Below, in pieces: positions 19,735 to 63,539 of a stretch of DNA of 64,000 bases. Below the pieces are notes generated by a model. That model worked only from the letters and a program-made list of their open reading frames with translations, was not told where the DNA came from and made no database searches. How positions within the stretch are numbered: position 1 is the first letter of the stretch; each line of letters opens with the position of its first letter. The DNA is taken from the IMG/VR virus record IMGVR_UViG_3300023174_000039, positions 1-64,000 of that record. One strand, given 5' to 3'. The position numbers and the translations under genes are program-made.

Positions 19735-20117
19735 TGAGAGCAAATGAATTTATTGTTGAAGACCGCAAGGGAAAGATTCCAGGTGGTCACGACAATGCCA
19801 TGCCAGGTGCTCACATCATGCGAGACAATGGCGGATATGATCGTATCAATCACATGAATCGTATGATGATGGCAGCAGCCATGCATGACGGCAAAAGCAA
19901 AAAAGCAATTCCTAGAGACCAAATGGATCCTGCAAGTTGGATTGAAAAATATAACTCGGCACACCCATACACCAAAGAAGAAGACAACATGATTCACGGT
20001 GCAATGAAAACCATTGGTGCAGAAAACATTCACACAGTTGGCGACCATCGTAGTTTAGAAAAACCTGATACACACAAAACCAGTCCAGTAACAGCATTCA
20101 AGGGCTACCCTAGATGA
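19734..20117 (+). CDS. Probable internal head protein, paralog A
   Basis: Starts MRANEFIVE; ends SPVTAFKGYPR. Confidence 0.65.
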   Translation: MRANEFIVEDRKGKIPGGHDNAMPGAHIMRDNGGYDRINHMNRMMMAAAMHDGKSKKAIPRDQMDPASWIEKYNSAHPYTKEEDNMIHGAMKTIGAENIHTVGDHRSLEKPDTHKTSPVTAFKGYPR

Positions 20118-20500
20118 GAGCCCGTGAGTTCTTAACTGAACAATCAACTTTGCCTCCCGAGCAGGCAGACCCCATGCGTTACACTTATGTAATTCCAGGA
20201 CTCAGTGCCGCTGATCCTTATCGCAATTATAGATTTGGAGTGGCACTTGCACGAGCACGTAGCAATGCAGGCACAGATGGTCTCACTGATAAGTTGCCTG
20301 AATGGTCACCAGAAACAGCATTTGGCGAACACGGTGTAGTAGAAGGTATGGCTGCTAACATTGCTGAAATTATTGACCAAGCATTGGCCATGACCAATAC
20401 CCCAGGCGGAAAGCAACTGGTTTCGACCCCCACAAGCACAGAACCTACATTTGTGGACACCCAAAGTCCAGTAAAGCCATTTAAAGGCTATCCACGCTGA
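20114..20500 (+). CDS. Probable internal head protein, paralog B
   Basis: Starts MRAREFLTE; ends SPVKPFKGYPR. Confidence 0.65.
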   Translation: MRAREFLTEQSTLPPEQADPMRYTYVIPGLSAADPYRNYRFGVALARARSNAGTDGLTDKLPEWSPETAFGEHGVVEGMAANIAEIIDQALAMTNTPGGKQLVSTPTSTEPTFVDTQSPVKPFKGYPR

Positions 20501-32162: not shown

Positions 32163-32918
32163 ATGAAAATTGTACTTGTAACAGGTGGGTTCGATCCCAT
32201 ACACTCCGGACACCTTGCCTACTTTCAGGCAGCAAAACAACTAGGTGATAAACTCATAGTTGGACTTAACTCAGATGAATGGCTTACTCGTAAAAAGGGC
32301 AAGCCATTCATGCCCATGAGTGAACGCTTTGCACTAGTTAGTGCATTGAGCATTGTGGATCAAGTGATTGTTTACAATGACAACGATAACTCCAGTTGTG
32401 ATGCAATTCAACTGATAAAAACACGTTACCCTAACGATACTATTGTGTTTGCCAACGGGGGCGATCGCACCAAGGATAACATTCCAGAAATGGTATTTGA
32501 CGATGTGGAGTTTGTGTTTGGTGTTGGTGGCGAAAACAAGATGAACTCTAGTTCCTGGATATTGGAAGATTGGAAGAAACCCAAGACCTCACGTGCCTGG
32601 GGGTATTATCGTGTGTTACACGAAGTTGGGCCAAACACCAAACTCAAAGAACTTACTGTGGCACCCAAGACCTGCTTGAGTATGCAACGACACGATCGAC
32701 GTGCTGAGTTTTGGTTTGTGGCAGAAGGTGAAGCCGCAGTGTATACCCTGGACAATTCCAGCGATCACGATCTTGTTGGTCATTTCAATGTGCATGACTA
32801 TATCTGGATCAAGAAAAATCAATGGCACATGCTGTGCAATGAAACTGACCAACCTCTTAAACTGATTGAAATTCAGTATGGTGAAGATTGTGTGGAAGAG
32901 GATATTGAGCGTCGATGA
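32163..32918 (+). CDS. Cytidylyltransferase (HIGH family) fused to a mannose-6-phosphate-isomerase-type cupin
   Basis: TGGFDPIHSGH and FANGGDR; C-terminal RAWGYY, LSMQRH..RAEFW, H and IEIQYG; TAAATA 32152-32157. Confidence 0.9.
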   Translation: MKIVLVTGGFDPIHSGHLAYFQAAKQLGDKLIVGLNSDEWLTRKKGKPFMPMSERFALVSALSIVDQVIVYNDNDNSSCDAIQLIKTRYPNDTIVFANGGDRTKDNIPEMVFDDVEFVFGVGGENKMNSSSWILEDWKKPKTSRAWGYYRVLHEVGPNTKLKELTVAPKTCLSMQRHDRRAEFWFVAEGEAAVYTLDNSSDHDLVGHFNVHDYIWIKKNQWHMLCNETDQPLKLIEIQYGEDCVEEDIERR

Positions 32919-56052: not shown

Positions 56053-56083
56053 TATTATTCCTTTGCTTTGCAAGCAGTATAGA

Positions 56084-56113
56084 TATTTATTAGAATTCAA
56101 AAAGCACTAAATA
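56084..56113. promoter_or_regulatory. Divergent pair of late promoters
   Basis: TATTTA 56084-56089 (minus-strand TAAATA) and TAAATA 56108-56113. Confidence 0.7.
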
Positions 56114-56132: not shown

Positions 56133-56381
56133 ATGCAAAAAAAGACACGTAGTTTGTTGGAAGAATTAGACTCAATGTATGTTGAGCGAGATCGTCGCCT
56201 CATCATTGAATCACGTGCAGATAATATAATTGCCAGTGCAATCAGGCTGGTTGAACAAATTGAACACGAGTTTGGCACTGAGCAAGCAGAGAATCTCACA
56301 AGAAAATTGCTCAATGCCATACGAACAAAGGATGCTGGAAAGTTTTCTAGATCCGTTAGGAAAACCAATGCAGATTCATGA
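56133..56381 (+). CDS. Hypothetical late protein
   Basis: 82-aa helical ORF after a late promoter; RSLLEE. Confidence 0.75.
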   Translation: MQKKTRSLLEELDSMYVERDRRLIIESRADNIIASAIRLVEQIEHEFGTEQAENLTRKLLNAIRTKDAGKFSRSVRKTNADS

Positions 56382-57069
56382 AATAACACGCAAACAAATA
56401 GCCGAAGCTGTTGGCGATAAAATATTAGGTGGCTTGACCAACATGCTGTACAAATCAGCAGGTGCTACCAATCCACATGATCAAAATGGTCTTCAAGGCC
56501 CTGCCACAGCTGGCAATCTAAGACAAGGTGCCGCTGGTGAAATGAATAAGACATTGCTAGCACCACTTGCAAAAGAAATGCAAAAACGTTGGGCACAAAC
56601 AGTGCAACAACTGTTGATAAAATCAGTTGATAAAACCACAGGTGCCCCTGCCACCAGTGCGGCGGGAATTGATAGCACGGCATTAGAAAAAGAAATGTAT
56701 ACGTTTATAAATACATTGGTTGGGTTTGACGTGGGCACATTGCCCAGCATGGATGATGGTTCAGGGCAGGCCAAGCAACTGGATTCAGAACTAAAGCCAC
56801 AGATCACAGCGGCCATTGCCAACACACAAAAGCCCACAACTGGAGCAGATGTTTGGCTGCCATTGGCCACTAGTATACAACGTGCAAAAAGCATAAAGAA
56901 TTTTGCTAGTGGCGGTAAAGCTGCCGGAGGCCCCAGCAAGTTCTTACCTATTACACCAACAGGAGTAGCAGGCAAAGTACTAGTAGATGGCCAGCCATAC
57001 AACCGAACTAATCCAATTCATATAGCATCAGTCAAGGCGGCGGGAATTGACCCTGCCACACTCAAATAA
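56368..57069 (+). CDS. Probable internal head protein
   Basis: MQIHEITRKQIAE N-terminus; A/G/K-rich. Confidence 0.6.
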   Translation: MQIHEITRKQIAEAVGDKILGGLTNMLYKSAGATNPHDQNGLQGPATAGNLRQGAAGEMNKTLLAPLAKEMQKRWAQTVQQLLIKSVDKTTGAPATSAAGIDSTALEKEMYTFINTLVGFDVGTLPSMDDGSGQAKQLDSELKPQITAAIANTQKPTTGADVWLPLATSIQRAKSIKNFASGGKAAGGPSKFLPITPTGVAGKVLVDGQPYNRTNPIHIASVKAAGIDPATLK

Positions 57070-58961
57070 TGAAATATCTAACAAAACTACTAGAAGGCGG
57101 CAATGTGTTCAAGGACAAACAAGGCCAGCCACTCACACAACGCATCAATCAAGCTGATGTGCCTGCCACCATCAAATACATTGAAAATATTTTGGGAATT
57201 GAATTCCCGCCCGAACGCTGGTTGGGATCTACGGGCCGCAAGCCCACATCAGGCGACTTGGATCTTGGTGTGGACCTAAATGAAATTGACAAAGATCAAT
57301 TGGCTGCTGCACTACAGCAAATTGTAACTGGCCAGGGACTGGATCCACGTGAATGGGTTGTTAAAAAGGGCGAAGTACACTTTAGAACCCCCATTGCTGG
57401 AGATCCCAACAAAGGTTATGTACAAACAGACTTTATGTTTTTCCCCAATTTGGACTGGGGCACATTCTATTATGGTGGCGCAGAAGGGTCTGCATACAAA
57501 GGCATGAACCGCAATGTGCTAATGTCAAGTATGGCCAAGGCCTTGGGCTTTAAAGTGGGTGCAAATGGCATGTTCAGCAGATCAACTGAGCAACTGGTTC
57601 CTGGCGGAATGGATCCCAATCATGTGGCTCAAGTGTTATTGGGCCCAGCATTCACAAAAGAAAATCTAAAGAATGTGGAAAGCATCTACGCCGCATTGAG
57701 TAATGATCCCAATAAAGATGCCAAGCTAAAAGATTTCCGTGAATATCTAGCACGTGAAGGATTCAAAGAGCCACAACTGTCGGTGTCTGAAGATGATGTG
57801 GGCTTTTTGGGACGCCTGCGTGATCGTATTGTTAACAAGGGCTATGTGGCACTGGTAGAAGCCGAGGAACCTGGAGTAGGCGGCCGAGCCAAGGGCATTG
57901 AACACCTGGAAGATCTAGTGTTCCGTCGTGGCACACAAGGTATTCAAGACGCCTTGGACATTGTGCAACATGCTACAGAGAATCCCCGAACAACCACTGC
58001 CAAGTGGGACGGTAAGCCAGCTGTGATTTGGGGTCGCAAACCCAGCACAGGCGAGTTTGTGTTGACTGATGGATCCGGCTTTGAAGCCAAGGGCTACGAC
58101 GGTCTTGCTACCAGTCCACAAATGATGGCTGCTATCCAACGCACACGGTCAGGCAATCGCGATGAATTGATCAACTTGTATGCACAGCTATTCCCTGTGC
58201 TAGAAGCCACACTGCCAGCCAACTTCCGCGGCTACGTCAAAGGTGATCTGTTGTACATGTCAACCCCGCCAGAAATTGCCGGTAACTATGTGTTCCGCCC
58301 CAACACTATTGAGTATAAAATTCCAGCTCGAAGTAAATTGGGACAACGCATCGGAAACAGTGACATTGGTATTGCTGTACACTCAATGTATTCGGATGTG
58401 GGCGATGCACGTCAACCACTTAAAGGTGTGACATTTAATGAAGTACCTGGCCTAATGCTAGAGCGTCCAGCAACACCATCAGCATTGGTAACAGAACCTG
58501 CCAAAGTCAAACAACTCAAGCAATTGATACGCACAGATGGTGCAGACATTGCCACATTGTTTAATCCTGCCGAACTGCGAGCACACAAGATCACAGACCT
58601 TGCCAAACTATGCGTGGACTATATCAACACCAAGGTTGGTGCACCACTGAACCCGCAAACACTATTGCCCGAGTTTGGCCACTGGTTGCAAAGCCGAGTA
58701 ACACCCAGCAAGTTCCGTAATATTGTGGAGTATCTGGAAAGCCCCAGTAGCAATACCCCTGCGCTGGCCGCTGCCTTTACTGCGTTTATACTGTTGCATG
58801 ATTTGAAGATGGACATTCTAAAACAAGCAGATCTAGAGCATCCAGGACAAGAAGGCTGGGTCATGGCCACCCCTGCAGGTTATGCCAAGGCTGTAAATCG
58901 CTTTGATCCCAATGCTTTTGCTGCTCAAAATCGGCAGAGAAATAACCCTCAACCCACGTGA
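57069..58961 (+). CDS. Fusion of Pol-beta-type nucleotidyltransferase and RNA-ligase-like (KxDG) domain
   Basis: GSTG..SGDLD..VQTD in the N-terminal half; KWDG, KGDLL, EGWV and YAK ligase motifs in the C-terminal half. Confidence 0.7.
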   Translation: MKYLTKLLEGGNVFKDKQGQPLTQRINQADVPATIKYIENILGIEFPPERWLGSTGRKPTSGDLDLGVDLNEIDKDQLAAALQQIVTGQGLDPREWVVKKGEVHFRTPIAGDPNKGYVQTDFMFFPNLDWGTFYYGGAEGSAYKGMNRNVLMSSMAKALGFKVGANGMFSRSTEQLVPGGMDPNHVAQVLLGPAFTKENLKNVESIYAALSNDPNKDAKLKDFREYLAREGFKEPQLSVSEDDVGFLGRLRDRIVNKGYVALVEAEEPGVGGRAKGIEHLEDLVFRRGTQGIQDALDIVQHATENPRTTTAKWDGKPAVIWGRKPSTGEFVLTDGSGFEAKGYDGLATSPQMMAAIQRTRSGNRDELINLYAQLFPVLEATLPANFRGYVKGDLLYMSTPPEIAGNYVFRPNTIEYKIPARSKLGQRIGNSDIGIAVHSMYSDVGDARQPLKGVTFNEVPGLMLERPATPSALVTEPAKVKQLKQLIRTDGADIATLFNPAELRAHKITDLAKLCVDYINTKVGAPLNPQTLLPEFGHWLQSRVTPSKFRNIVEYLESPSSNTPALAAAFTAFILLHDLKMDILKQADLEHPGQEGWVMATPAGYAKAVNRFDPNAFAAQNRQRNNPQPT

Positions 58962-60195: not shown

Positions 60196-60689
60196 ACAAA
60201 CAACACAAGCTAGAAGCTTTTGCCGCAAAAGAAATACTCAATCTGACTGATAAATTGATTGTGGGTGATGGCCGCGGCGGCATCTTGGCTTTTGGAAAAT
60301 ACAATATAGTTCCTACAGATTACAAGTTTGTGGTCAATATAAAAAATCAAGATTCTGTCACATTTGGCAGCAAACGCAGTGCAATCAGCTGGTGTATTGC
60401 AGATCAACACAATCAACTCACACTGGCACGTATTATACACACGCTAGACACTAAAAAACACACACTGGCAGCGGATATACACTGCCGCAAGACCCTTGCA
60501 GAACGTAGCAAGCACGAAGATTTTTACGAAGGTGTTTCCATCAAACTTCAACGCAAGATTGATCATATGGAAGCAGTTGATGCCGAATTAGAGAAATGTT
60601 TAATTTCGGCTAAATATATGCAAATTAGAGGATTCTCAAATGAAACTGCAAGAACTGGCCGCCCCGTCGCCAACAAAACAAATCGCTAA
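60192..60689 (+). CDS. Hypothetical protein
   Basis: ATGA-coupled; start at MNKQHKL. Confidence 0.7.
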   Translation: MNKQHKLEAFAAKEILNLTDKLIVGDGRGGILAFGKYNIVPTDYKFVVNIKNQDSVTFGSKRSAISWCIADQHNQLTLARIIHTLDTKKHTLAADIHCRKTLAERSKHEDFYEGVSIKLQRKIDHMEAVDAELEKCLISAKYMQIRGFSNETARTGRPVANKTNR

Positions 60690-61530
60690 AGTTTTCGAAA
60701 GTTACTTTGGTTCCAACATTGAATTTGACCGTTTGACTCAGCGTCAGACTCAACACCTGTTGCAACGTGTGCAAGGGTTGTTGCGTGAACATCGTTCAGG
60801 TTCAGACAGATATCAAAGCCAACAAAATCCAGGTTACCTTAAACTGGTAATGATGGAGCAGGCATTGACCACACGCATGGCCGAAGAAGCTATTCCTGTT
60901 GCTCCAGCCGCTGGTGTTGGTGCCGCACCCGGTGCCAAGCCTGCACAACCAAGCACTGTGCAAGTTAAAGATCCTAAATTGGCTGCCGCATTAAAGAAAA
61001 GCACAGCTGGTCAGGCATTGAATCCTGAAGAACAAAAGCTAGTGGCTGGTGCTGCCATGATGCAGGCTGAAAGCCGTTTGCGTCGTGCAATGACTCGATT
61101 GAACGAATCAGAAGTACAACAAGCCCAAGTGGTGTTGGCCGCACAAGACATGGTTGACAAGATGCAAGGCATGTTGGAAGATGTTACTGAGTTGCAGTTC
61201 AAAGAATTGCCAGCTCTGGTTGACTCAATCAAGAATCAAGTGGGTATTGACCAAGCCACACAATTCAACACAGATGCCACAGCCGCTCTTGCTGGCCTGG
61301 TACAGAATCTACAAGGCGCCAAAGCCGCATTGGATCAAGCACTTGGTGTGGTAACCGGTCAAGCACCTCCACCGGATGCTGGCATGGCAGCACCTGCTCC
61401 TGGCGCAGTTGATCCAGCAGCCGGTATGGCGCCACCTGCACCCGAAATGGGCGGCGAAATGCCTCCTGAGATGCCTGCTGATCCAGAAGCAGCCGCAGGC
61501 GGCCCTGCCCTAGGCAGAGCACGTAGATAA
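60640..61530 (+). CDS. Prohead core/scaffold-like protein
   Basis: MKLQEL start, LNESE site, helical core and P/A/G/M-rich tail. Confidence 0.55.
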   Translation: MKLQELAAPSPTKQIAKVFESYFGSNIEFDRLTQRQTQHLLQRVQGLLREHRSGSDRYQSQQNPGYLKLVMMEQALTTRMAEEAIPVAPAAGVGAAPGAKPAQPSTVQVKDPKLAAALKKSTAGQALNPEEQKLVAGAAMMQAESRLRRAMTRLNESEVQQAQVVLAAQDMVDKMQGMLEDVTELQFKELPALVDSIKNQVGIDQATQFNTDATAALAGLVQNLQGAKAALDQALGVVTGQAPPPDAGMAAPAPGAVDPAAGMAPPAPEMGGEMPPEMPADPEAAAGGPALGRARR

Positions 61531-61889
61531 TGCGATTCCGTGAATTCATAACAGAATCCACAACACCCAGCCCCGACGAACTGTTAGGGCTGGTCAACTT
61601 TCTTGCCGGACGTGCCGATGACGAAGGCGCACAAAAACAGATTTCTCGAGGTGCATTTATTAGTCTTGCACAAAGTCTAAACATCAATGTTACCGAAGAC
61701 AACATTGAAGAAATTGTAGGACAACCTCCACTGAGTTCGGTGCTGGAACCCATGACTCCAGAATCACAAGAAATCATATTCAAAGGCGCAGGCGAACCCG
61801 AAGCGCCTGCCACAATGCCTGTGAACAAAGCACAAGACATAGTTGCCAATGCCGCTAAATCGGCAATGAATAAACCACGAGGCGTTTAA
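61530..61889 (+). CDS. Probable internal head protein
   Basis: MRFREFITE N-terminus. Confidence 0.6.
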   Translation: MRFREFITESTTPSPDELLGLVNFLAGRADDEGAQKQISRGAFISLAQSLNINVTEDNIEEIVGQPPLSSVLEPMTPESQEIIFKGAGEPEAPATMPVNKAQDIVANAAKSAMNKPRGV

Positions 61890-61909: not shown

Positions 61910-61938
61910 TTGACGGTAGGCGTTATATATAGTATAAT
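61910..61938 (+). promoter_or_regulatory. Sigma70-type early promoter
   Basis: TTGACG-N17-TATAAT. Confidence 0.85.
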
Positions 61939-61956: not shown

Positions 61957-62268
61957 ATGAAAAAGATCTTAATCACACTCATTTTAGCGGCAGCTGCCGT
62001 TCCTGCCTTGGCACAGCACTGGCAACATCACGGTTATAGACCCTACAGACCTTATGGACCTCCTGTATACAGTGGCGGTGGTTGGGTGGCACCACTCATA
62101 ATTGGTGGTGTAGTGGGTGCGGCAATTGCCAATCGTCCTGTGCCGGCAGAAACTGTGATTGTGCAGAGACAACCCGTAATTGTGCAACAGCAAGAATCAT
62201 GCACAGCTTGGAAAGAAATACAAACATCGGATGGTAACACCTACCGAGAAAGAACCTGTACACAATAA
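61957..62268 (+). CDS. Exported/membrane protein with signal peptide and glycine-zipper-like segment
   Basis: MKKILITLILAAAAVPALA, WVAPLIIGGVVGAAIA and a C-terminal Cys pair. Confidence 0.75.
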   Translation: MKKILITLILAAAAVPALAQHWQHHGYRPYRPYGPPVYSGGGWVAPLIIGGVVGAAIANRPVPAETVIVQRQPVIVQQQESCTAWKEIQTSDGNTYRERTCTQ

Positions 62269-62269
62269 T

Positions 62270-62662
62270 ATGGCATACTCACAAAAAGTTGTAGACCACT
62301 ACGAAAACCCACGCAACGTGGGTTCCTTCTCCAAGGACGACACTGACATTGGCACAGGCATGGTAGGTGCTCCTGCCTGCGGTGATGTAATGAAATTGCA
62401 GATCAAAGTTGTAGATGGAATAATTACAGATGCACGATTTAAAACATATGGCTGCGGGTCAGCCATTGCATCAAGTTCATTGATCACTGAAATGGTCAAA
62501 GGCATGACACTAGATAATGCTTCACAAATTAAAAACTCAGAAATTGCTGAAGAACTAGCACTACCTCCTGTAAAAATACACTGTAGTATTCTTGCAGAAG
62601 ATGCTATCAAAGCCGCAGTTGAAGACTACAGAAAGAAACATGACACAACGCATCTTAATTGA
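62270..62662 (+). CDS. iscU: Fe-S cluster scaffold IscU
   Basis: MAYSQKVVDHYENPRNVG, GAPACGDVM, TYGCGSA and LPPVKIHCS. Confidence 0.98.
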   Translation: MAYSQKVVDHYENPRNVGSFSKDDTDIGTGMVGAPACGDVMKLQIKVVDGIITDARFKTYGCGSAIASSSLITEMVKGMTLDNASQIKNSEIAEELALPPVKIHCSILAEDAIKAAVEDYRKKHDTTHLN

Positions 62663-63539
62663 CAAACTGGAATTTTATGTTACAAACGTTTGTAACTTGA
62701 CCTGCAACGGGTGTAACCGCTACAATAATTATAAATTTGCCGGATGGCAAAGTTGGGACGAATATGGCCCCATACTAGAACGCTGGGCAGAAAAAATTGA
62801 TATCCGCCATCCTGTTATTCTTGGCGGCGAGCCATTGCTCAATCCAGAAATCAACAAGTGGGTGGAAGGACTAAAACGCTTGTGGCCCGACCATTCCGGC
62901 GTACAAATTCAGAGCAACGGCACACGAATTGACAAGGTCAAGGGTTTGTATGAAGCTCTGGGCAACGGGCAAGGACACTGGATTGGTATCAGCATACACA
63001 ATCCCGACGACAAAGAAGAAATCTTTTCACGCATTAGAAACTTCTTGACAGCACCCATTACAGAAACCAGTGATCCCAATCATCCCATTGGTTCAGACTT
63101 TCAGTTTACTGACGTAAACAAAAACTATGTGCATGCCTGGATGAGCAACAAGTTTGTACAAAGTAATATTTTAGAATTGCCCAATGGAAGATTTGGACTG
63201 TACAACAGCGATCCTGTCAAGGCACATGACAATTGTGCCTTTGCTAGATTTAAAAACTATCACATGATCCGTGGCAAGATCTACAAGTGCGGCCCTGCTG
63301 CCTTGATGCCAGAATTTGATGAGCAGTATCAATTTGATATCTCGGACGAAGATCGATTGTTGATGAAAGGTTACAAGCCCTTGGCCATTGACGAGTTTGA
63401 CACACGTGGTGCTGAGTTCTTGGGCAATATTGACAATGTGATTGATCAATGCAAATTTTGCCCAGAATCATATGACTACAAACCTATTACTTTCACCAAC
63501 TTGAAAAAGAACTGGAAGAAAGATGATGTTGTAGCATGA
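62640..63539 (+). CDS. Radical SAM protein with C-terminal Cys cluster
   Basis: CNLTCNGC and GGEPLL; C..KC..CKFC at the C-terminus. Confidence 0.9.
   Translation: MTQRILIDKLEFYVTNVCNLTCNGCNRYNNYKFAGWQSWDEYGPILERWAEKIDIRHPVILGGEPLLNPEINKWVEGLKRLWPDHSGVQIQSNGTRIDKVKGLYEALGNGQGHWIGISIHNPDDKEEIFSRIRNFLTAPITETSDPNHPIGSDFQFTDVNKNYVHAWMSNKFVQSNILELPNGRFGLYNSDPVKAHDNCAFARFKNYHMIRGKIYKCGPAALMPEFDEQYQFDISDEDRLLMKGYKPLAIDEFDTRGAEFLGNIDNVIDQCKFCPESYDYKPITFTNLKKNWKKDDVVA

Follow-up and report, generated by a model that had tools for sequence, protein, structure and literature searches.

A jumbo-phage fusion of a minimal family X polymerase-like domain and a DUF6267 ligase-like domain, and its possible role as a head-associated repair kit

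Which two enzymes are joined in one 630-amino acid (aa) protein of a jumbo phage, on which nucleic acid would they act, and could they travel inside the phage head? These questions are raised by an open reading frame (ORF) in IMG/VR virus record IMGVR_UViG_3300023174_000039, a jumbo-phage record of 331,654 bp whose first 64 kb constitute the window analyzed here. An earlier note, made from the sequence, described the ORF as it stands and proposed that it encodes an injected RNA-repair kit. Our analysis retained the kit of two enzymes and found its association with the head plausible; RNA or tRNA as its substrate is probably wrong. We give about even chances to the complete reading favored here, in which two cooperating enzymes fill and seal gaps in phage duplex DNA and part of the protein is packaged in the head.

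57069..58961, plus strand: the whole gene, encoding the 630-aa fusion protein, full-length homologues of which are abundant in metagenomes

A search of 1.8 billion proteins clustered at 50% matched 1,435 representatives to the fusion protein (E <= 0.001). NCBIfam has no name for it, PHROGs matched it only to a family of unknown function, and the PDB, when searched by sequence with the whole protein or with the profile of either domain, returned noise only. A literature search for 'DUF6267' as a name yielded no paper, and paralogues of either half were not found elsewhere in the same genome.

Two enzyme-like halves in one polypeptide

Conservation was evaluated with a 45-sequence alignment for each half, composed of diverse homologues with about 32-69% identity to the query. 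The elements of the N-terminal half are as follows.

57069..57773, plus strand: N-terminal domain (aa 1-235), a predicted minimal family-X-like nucleotidyltransferase, comprising a Pol beta palm plus thumb
57093..57104, plus strand: E9-G10-G11-N12, an invariant or nearly invariant N-terminal element of the domain in the alignment, preceded by a variable peptide
57225..57263, plus strand: GS-x8-DxD (G53, S54, D63, D65), the palm nucleotide- and metal-binding motif; D63 and D65 are invariant and G53 is conserved in at least 90%
57429..57431, plus strand: D121, the third catalytic carboxylate, in the VQTDFMF strand (model strand E117-125); invariant
57447..57680, plus strand: thumb-like subdomain (aa 127-204; YYGG, helix 145-158, beta-hairpin 161-170), matching the Pol beta thumb as far as residue 335

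The Pol-beta-type GS..DxD..D domain reported earlier is therefore present, its three carboxylates (D63, D65, D121) being invariant, and the motif coordinates given for both halves were exact (GS..DxD from 57225, D121 at 57429, KWDG at 58002, EGWV at 58851). Its description as a CCA-adding-type enzyme was wrong. A structure search with the model of this half returned PolX enzymes at all of ranks 1-10, aligned over 150-178 residues, with scores of 10.2 for Pol beta, 9.5 for Thermus PolX, 9.3 for Pol lambda, 9.1 for Leishmania Pol beta, 8.5 for TdT, 7.9 for Pol mu and 7.2 for Deinococcus PolX; Pol X of African swine fever virus (ASFV) scored 9.0 and was matched over its whole 174 residues. CCA-adding enzymes scored 4.5-4.6 and, like terminal uridylyltransferases (TUTases), matched in the palm only; the head and neck/body architecture of class II nucleotidyltransferases is not seen here.

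The structural alignment to Pol beta covered its residues 139-335, with palm and thumb. The domain is about 235 aa long and its alignments begin in the Pol beta palm, leaving no fingers (helix-hairpin-helix, HhH) and no 8-kDa deoxyribose phosphate (dRP) lyase domain. Within the thumb, S154 and G167 were invariant among the 45 homologues and R148, A156, and K157 were conserved in at least 90%. In the ESM Atlas the N-terminal domain neighbors phage clusters carrying DNA_pol_B_palm and, by structure, giant-virus PolX proteins and fusions of NAD-dependent ligase with PolX. By sequence the link to PolX is marginal: neither DNA_pol_B_palm nor DNA_pol_B_thumb of Pfam matched the query at E <= 1, and one of the 45 relatives matched the palm (E 0.0018) and one the thumb (E 0.14). 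The Pol beta motifs GS-x9-DxD and YFTGS...KGFTI resemble GS-x8-DxD and the YYGG...helix...GFKV hairpin found here, a presumed residue-level equivalence. The model thus describes the N-terminal half as a very divergent, minimal PolX-like enzyme with an architecture like that of ASFV Pol X.

The C-terminal half contains the elements below.

57885..58958, plus strand: C-terminal domain (aa 273-630), DUF6267, predicted from Pfam and the model to be a ligase-type lysine nucleotidyltransferase without an oligonucleotide-binding (OB) domain
58002..58013, plus strand: motif I, K312-W-D314-G315, with the predicted nucleotidyl-lysine; K, D, and G invariant
58068..58070, plus strand: D334 in the FVLTD strand, candidate acidic residue of motif III, assigned by position only; invariant
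58242..58256 (about), plus strand: G392-D393-L-L-Y, named motif III in the earlier note; D393 invariant, model strand 127-135
58497..58838, plus strand: six-helix insertion (aa 477-590, ~115 residues) in the model secondary structure, between the IIIa region and motif IV
58851..58862, plus strand: motif IV, E595-G596-W-V598; E, G, and V invariant
58887..58901, plus strand (K607 at 58887-58889): motif V region, K607-A-V-N-R611; K607 and R611 invariant

DUF6267 (PF19782) matched aa 277-612 with 99.6 bits against a cut-off of 27. The model of this half displayed a nucleotidyltransferase fold, with motifs IV and V on adjacent strands (335-340 and 343-347), and R323 was likewise invariant among the 45 homologues. 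Of the four ligase motifs proposed earlier, I, IV, and V were borne out by their invariance; GDLLY, proposed as motif III, is by its position more likely motif IIIa or a neighboring strand. The six-helix insertion gave no informative structural match. The protein ends 19 residues after R611, and a C-terminal OB domain with motif VI is absent. PF01068, the canonical ATP-dependent DNA ligase, did not match the fusion protein; the sole match to it in the genome is a canonical ATP-dependent DNA ligase at 76670-77263, beyond the window, and the genome has no match to the NAD ligase family PF01653. By fold and active site in the model, the C-terminal half is a predicted ligase of the lysine-nucleotidyltransferase superfamily.

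The invariance of the catalytic residues of both halves in such diverse homologues indicates that the motifs are real active-site signatures and not chance occurrences. It also speaks against a head protein with a structural or scaffolding role that has lost catalysis and merely kept its enzyme folds. Such a protein would agree with the detection of a homologue in virions and with the location of the gene among virion-type genes, yet we find the idea scarcely credible, given that the residues of both active sites are all retained down to ~32% identity to the query.

Pairing of the halves and their likely substrate

Among the 150 best representatives, the two halves were fused in the order N-C in 56 and C-N in 5, while 36 contained the N-terminal half only and 53 the C-terminal half only. 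In metagenomic contig L014, a stand-alone PolX-like gene lies directly before a stand-alone ligase-like gene, and in Agrobacterium jumbo phage Atu_ph07 the PolX-like gp065 (E 3e-32 to the N-terminal profile) is directly preceded by gp066. The latter shows EKLDGS, EGVV, and FKTK motifs by eye and a sub-threshold Pfam RNA_ligase match (E 0.002). As a DUF6267 member it was rejected: hhalign with the ligase profile aligned motif I only, at 1% probability, and we therefore call it ligase-like. T4-like cyanophages contain the ligase half only, and a DUF6267 match is carried by 305 isolated phage genomes, mostly of marine cyanophages. Judged from these gene arrangements, the PolX-like and ligase-like halves form a functional pair, in an obligate partnership.

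The commonest third partner was a HIGH-motif nucleotidyltransferase (CTP_transf_like), fused at either end of the core; relatives listed with it are P0139, P0140, P0150, P0158, and P0169. It is fused to the ligase half in S-PM2 (A0A0M6VVW4) and adjacent in cyanophage S-WAM1 (L003:5173-6228), where the HIGH-motif protein starts with the leader MRFRQFIIE. This partner is weakly NMNAT-like. Its frequency could favor a ligase-like half that joins no nucleic acid and, together with the HIGH-motif enzyme, transfers a nucleotide to a protein, to a DNA end, or to a small molecule, for instance in order to cap or modify genome ends or to exploit NAD+ or another nucleotide made in situ. Fusions to Amidoligase_2 and NT5C, seen once or twice each, and the inclusion of capping enzymes in the lysine-nucleotidyltransferase superfamily point the same way; we regard this explanation as very improbable. 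The recurrent partner may be a sign that the ligase uses an unusual nucleotide cofactor. One of the four CTP_transf_like genes of the present genome lies in the window at 32163-32918, not adjacent to the fusion gene. Nothing usable was found in the literature searched on the cyanophage 'cytitidyltransferase' gene, and the short neighborhoods of P0208 and P0127 were uninformative.

An RNA-repair kit would require the Pol-beta-type half to restore one or a few nucleotides at damaged 3' ends of RNA or tRNA as RlaP does, and an RNA ligase half to rejoin the RNA, countering host anticodon nucleases or other RNase effectors. A precedent is the pairing of RlaP with an RNA ligase in bacteria and jumbo phages, which likewise couples a nucleotidyltransferase of the Pol beta superfamily to an OB-less ligase with a predicted logic of adding a nucleotide and then ligating. 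However, the RlaP family PF10127 found nothing in this genome at E <= 10 and nothing among the 45 relatives, and the second domain of RlaP is all-helical, whereas the second subdomain of the N-terminal half has a beta-hairpin like that of the PolX thumb. In known enzymes, this thumb holds the template-primer duplex. Pfam places the ligase in neither the Rnl1 nor the Rnl2 family (PF09511, PF09414), since neither of them matched the fusion protein or anything else in the genome; control genomes were silent for PF09511 too, which weakens that absence. For end healing, no AAA_33-type polynucleotide kinase was recognizable in the genome, and association with the head would place the enzyme beside DNA. 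Together, these points make the RNA-repair explanation doubtful. The most likely substrate is duplex DNA of the phage, which possibly contains a patch of ribonucleotides, and the protein may be an injected nucleic-acid repair kit, for DNA more likely than for tRNA.

During the search for a kinase, an AAA_33 match at 84 kb was rejected as ClpX-like (ClpX-like ATPase, 84007-85197). The same genome contains a cluster of 24 tRNA genes at 216868-225113, also beyond the window.

Association with the phage head

The family is tied to phage heads by four independent lines of evidence: a virion proteome, N-terminal leaders, a conserved gene module, and a head-assembly gene cluster. In the virion proteome of Atu_ph07, gp65 was identified by 10 unique peptides with 36.8% coverage at about full size (PMC6102473, Table S5). 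Proteins gp64, gp67, and gp68 were found as well; the ligase-like gp66 was not identified, and the preparation held some obvious non-structural proteins (PMC6102473).

Stand-alone relatives of both halves often start with a leader of roughly 10 aa, M-[KR]-x-x-[DE]-[FIL]-...-E, for example MRFFEF..., MRAQEFLTEE..., MRFTEFKTTLLE..., and MRYFEIKSVLLE.... With a fixed pattern, ^M[KRN]x(2-3)[DE][FIL], and a background of 18/384 ORFs of this genome, the leader was detected in 17 of 35 stand-alone C-terminal proteins (p 1e-11) and in 7 of 26 stand-alone N-terminal proteins (p 4e-4). It resembles the capsid targeting sequence (CTS) of T4. The CTS concept is confirmed (PMC9026906, PMC10229621). The link between leader and virion was evaluated in Atu_ph07 by rebuilding its genome, in which molecular weight and position were used to assign 99 entries of Table S5 to ORFs. 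The pattern specified in advance occurred in 10/97 virion ORFs versus 17/730 others (odds ratio 4.8, p 5e-4), and a relaxed post hoc pattern in 8/97 versus 7/730 (p 9e-5); some of the leader-positive ORFs are paralogous, so that the positives are not fully independent. In the present genome, nearly the same leader appears on ORFs that are otherwise unrelated.

20114-20500 and 61530-61889 of the window, and 169609-170187, 184569-185576, and 186603-186821 of the genome: five ORFs with MRxxEF/I...E leaders (MRAREFLTEQ, MRFREFITES, MRAREFTTEA, MRAHEFLSEG, MRAHEIMENA)

A module consisting of a gp068-like small virion protein, PolX, ligase, and a gp064-like protein is kept in the window, in Atu_ph07, and in L014. 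Two genes of the window precede the fusion gene in this module or next to it.

56133..56381, plus strand: 82-aa protein, a conserved neighbor in the module and homologue of the small virion protein of the Atu_ph07 gp068 type (phrog_11854, E 3e-16), 40% identical to the equivalent gene of L014
56368..57069, plus strand: 233-aa ORF upstream of the fusion gene and in translational coupling with it, without detectable homologues

In another contig, L043 (225-10072), a C-N (ligase-PolX) fusion is located directly upstream, on the same strand, of genes for terminase, T4-type portal, and Peptidase_S77. A prohead protease of the gp21 type is also encoded in the present genome (Peptidase_S77, 81 bits, 319159-319602). 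Possible sites for such a protease had been proposed in the linker between the two halves.

57774..57884, plus strand: interdomain linker (aa 236-272; VSE, helix FLGRLRDRIVNKG, LVE), with low pLDDT (predicted local distance difference test) at the start of the C-domain model
57783-57791, plus strand: VSE (aa 239-241)
57804-57842, plus strand: conserved helix FLGRLRDRIVNKG (aa 246-258), with the pattern F-L-A-R-L-R-D-R-I-V-N-x-G in the alignment of relatives
57852-57860, plus strand: LVE (aa 262-264), part of a semi-conserved [LI]-x-E-[GAS]-A that closely precedes the conserved RIxHxED

Both LVE and VSE are present as claimed, as candidate cleavage sites of the prohead protease. The whole protein contains 8 h-x-E triplets against about 7.3 expected from composition, and the mere presence of the two sites consequently says little. 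An h-x-E occurs no more than 8 residues upstream of RIxHxED in 72 of 83 relatives, and the position of LVE corresponds to the end of the leader in stand-alone ligase genes. In fusions, LVE may thus be either a relic or a protease site that is still in use. Some stand-alone proteins of the ligase half (P0156, P0177) carry the FLARLRDRIVNxG helix at their N-terminus as well.

Several observations weigh against the packaging of this particular protein. The start of the query, MKYLTKLLE, which the earlier note called targeting-like, falls outside the leader pattern and is not conserved even among close relatives, 34 of which have it shortened to MYLKE; in some distant ones it is absent. What is conserved at the N-terminus is EGGNVFKD, an element of the PolX-like domain itself. 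N-C fusions fit the leader pattern in 2/43 cases, no more than background, and VSE is conserved among close relatives only. Finally, genes for primase and DnaB helicase lie immediately upstream of the cluster that contains the fusion gene.

The last point leads to an alternative with the same enzymology, in which the protein stays unpackaged in the cytoplasm as a replication or recombination accessory, serving in gap filling, end joining, or the processing of Okazaki fragments or recombination intermediates, and as the only ligase of phages without any other. Primase and DnaB helicase are encoded a few genes upstream of it in this genome, in Atu_ph07, and in S-WAM1, and a canonical ligase, whether ATP- or NAD-dependent, is absent from S-WAM1. 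The missing CTS-like leader of the query would be in line with a cytoplasmic role, as would a sigma-70-like match ahead of the first gene of the cluster (TTGCAA-17-TAGAAT, 56068-56096). On the other hand, the gp65 peptides from Atu_ph07 virions, the strong enrichment of leaders on stand-alone homologues, and the L043 gene cluster all argue for the head. The immediate neighbors of the fusion gene are virion-type proteins, and in Atu_ph07 the primase and helicase genes themselves are inside a block rich in virion genes (PMC6102473). We consider the cytoplasmic accessory unlikely.

The fusion gene belongs to a compact cluster of co-directional genes (56133 to about 61889), and its ATG overlaps the stop codon of the upstream ORF (TAATG), an arrangement of translational coupling. 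That the cluster is a late operon was not confirmed: a T4-type late promoter, TATAAATA, was found neither ahead of the first gene of the cluster nor ahead of the fusion-gene start. The plus strand of the window contains 3 copies, about the chance level, the nearest at 56706 inside the preceding ORF. In a sequence scan, sigma-70 promoter-like sites and terminators occurred at the frequency of shuffled sequence. With both signals at such levels, expression timing is unreadable from sequence.

Further features near the gene or in Atu_ph07 were recorded. A sigma-70-like match, TTGACG-17-TATAAT (11/12), is located at 61910-61938, ahead of the ORF at 61957. At 60640-61530 of the window, a 296-aa protein matches PHROG 14154 ('virion structural protein') and has a long low-complexity C-terminus rich in Ala, Pro, Met, and Gly; it may be an internal or ejection protein. 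The radical-SAM or QueE-like protein at 62592-63539 (PHROGs 1802, 13987, 2076) could be linked to 7-deazaguanine or another nucleotide modification. In Atu_ph07 (L005), gp053-gp063 are eleven tandem paralogues of ~250-aa units, 23-47% identical; the longer members are gp053 (778 aa), gp054 (490 aa, made of two units), and gp063 (362 aa). All were detected in virions, and several have MRxxQL[LI]E-type leaders. As candidate paralogues of the PolX-like half they were rejected, since they constitute a family of their own with no relation to the PolX-like or the ligase half.

A possible fill-and-seal mechanism and its relatives

For the packaged polymerase-ligase pair, the following course can be proposed. 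The polymerase half would extend a 3'-OH at a duplex gap or recessed end. In the ligase half, a nucleotide, presumably AMP, would be loaded onto K312 of KWDG, in an active site completed by E595 (motif IV) and K607 (motif V), and the resulting nick would be sealed as in short-patch repair. A fraction of the protein would enter the prohead and travel with the DNA, acting on the phage genome while it is being packaged or as soon as it has been injected, and nicks, gaps, or breaks could be mended ahead of phage gene expression. A broader proposal is more tentative: T4-like phages, from marine cyanophages and pelagiphages to jumbo phages, would possibly load a polymerase-ligase pair through a CTS-type leader or a fusion, inject it with the genome, and so mend nicks, gaps, or breaks caused by host defences in the incoming DNA ahead of any phage gene expression.

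PolX-ligase fusions, and packaged PolX plus ligase, are already known in giant eukaryotic viruses. ASFV Pol X (pO174L) also lacks fingers and the 8-kDa domain, although sequence similarity of the N-terminal half to PolX is almost nil. Pol X, DNA ligase (pNP419L), and AP endonuclease of this eukaryotic virus are separate proteins, in contrast to the fused halves here, and its ligase is a canonical ATP-dependent enzyme with an OB domain, unlike the OB-less DUF6267. In Phaeocystis globosa virus, the PolX-ligase fusion PgVPolX performs gap filling and nick sealing in concert (PMC5537341). The ligase part of PgVPolX is NAD+-dependent and LigA-like, and the protein has dRP/AP (apurinic/apyrimidinic) lyase activity, whereas the present ligase belongs to another family and no 8-kDa lyase domain is present.

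Bacterial LigD likewise combines a repair polymerase and a ligase in one polypeptide for DNA ends, and its ligase domain was structural match rank 27; it differs in its archaeo-eukaryotic primase-type polymerase, its OB-bearing ligase, and its need for Ku. The nick-sealing RNA ligases of the Rnl5 type (Naegleria NgrRnl, Deinococcus DraRnl) have an N-terminal OB domain and no helical insertion, and share ~13% identity with the C-terminal half and no match at the hidden Markov model (HMM) level. T4 targets its internal proteins and Alt to the prohead by an N-terminal CTS; relatives of both halves bear a similar leader, and a gp21-type protease is present, but T4 is not known to package a polymerase or ligase and the query itself is without the leader. 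The literature searched contained no description of a minimal phage PolX, of DUF6267 as a ligase family, or of capsid targeting of repair enzymes.

DUF6267 is a large uncharacterized family, to which this work assigns a predicted ligase fold and active site and a hidden partner, a minimal family X polymerase; few such polymerases are known from phages. As small, self-contained enzymes, fill-and-seal proteins of this kind could be useful reagents. The family may also offer an answer to how DNA is sealed in cyanomyoviruses without a recognizable DNA ligase. If delivered in the capsid, the pair would parallel the packaged base excision repair (BER) enzymes of ASFV and make genome repair a new class of injected cargo, beside anti-restriction proteins and virion RNA polymerases. 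If true, no bacteriophage before would have been found to package machinery for nucleic-acid repair, here composed of a minimal PolX not recognized previously and a ligase of a new OB-less family, DUF6267.

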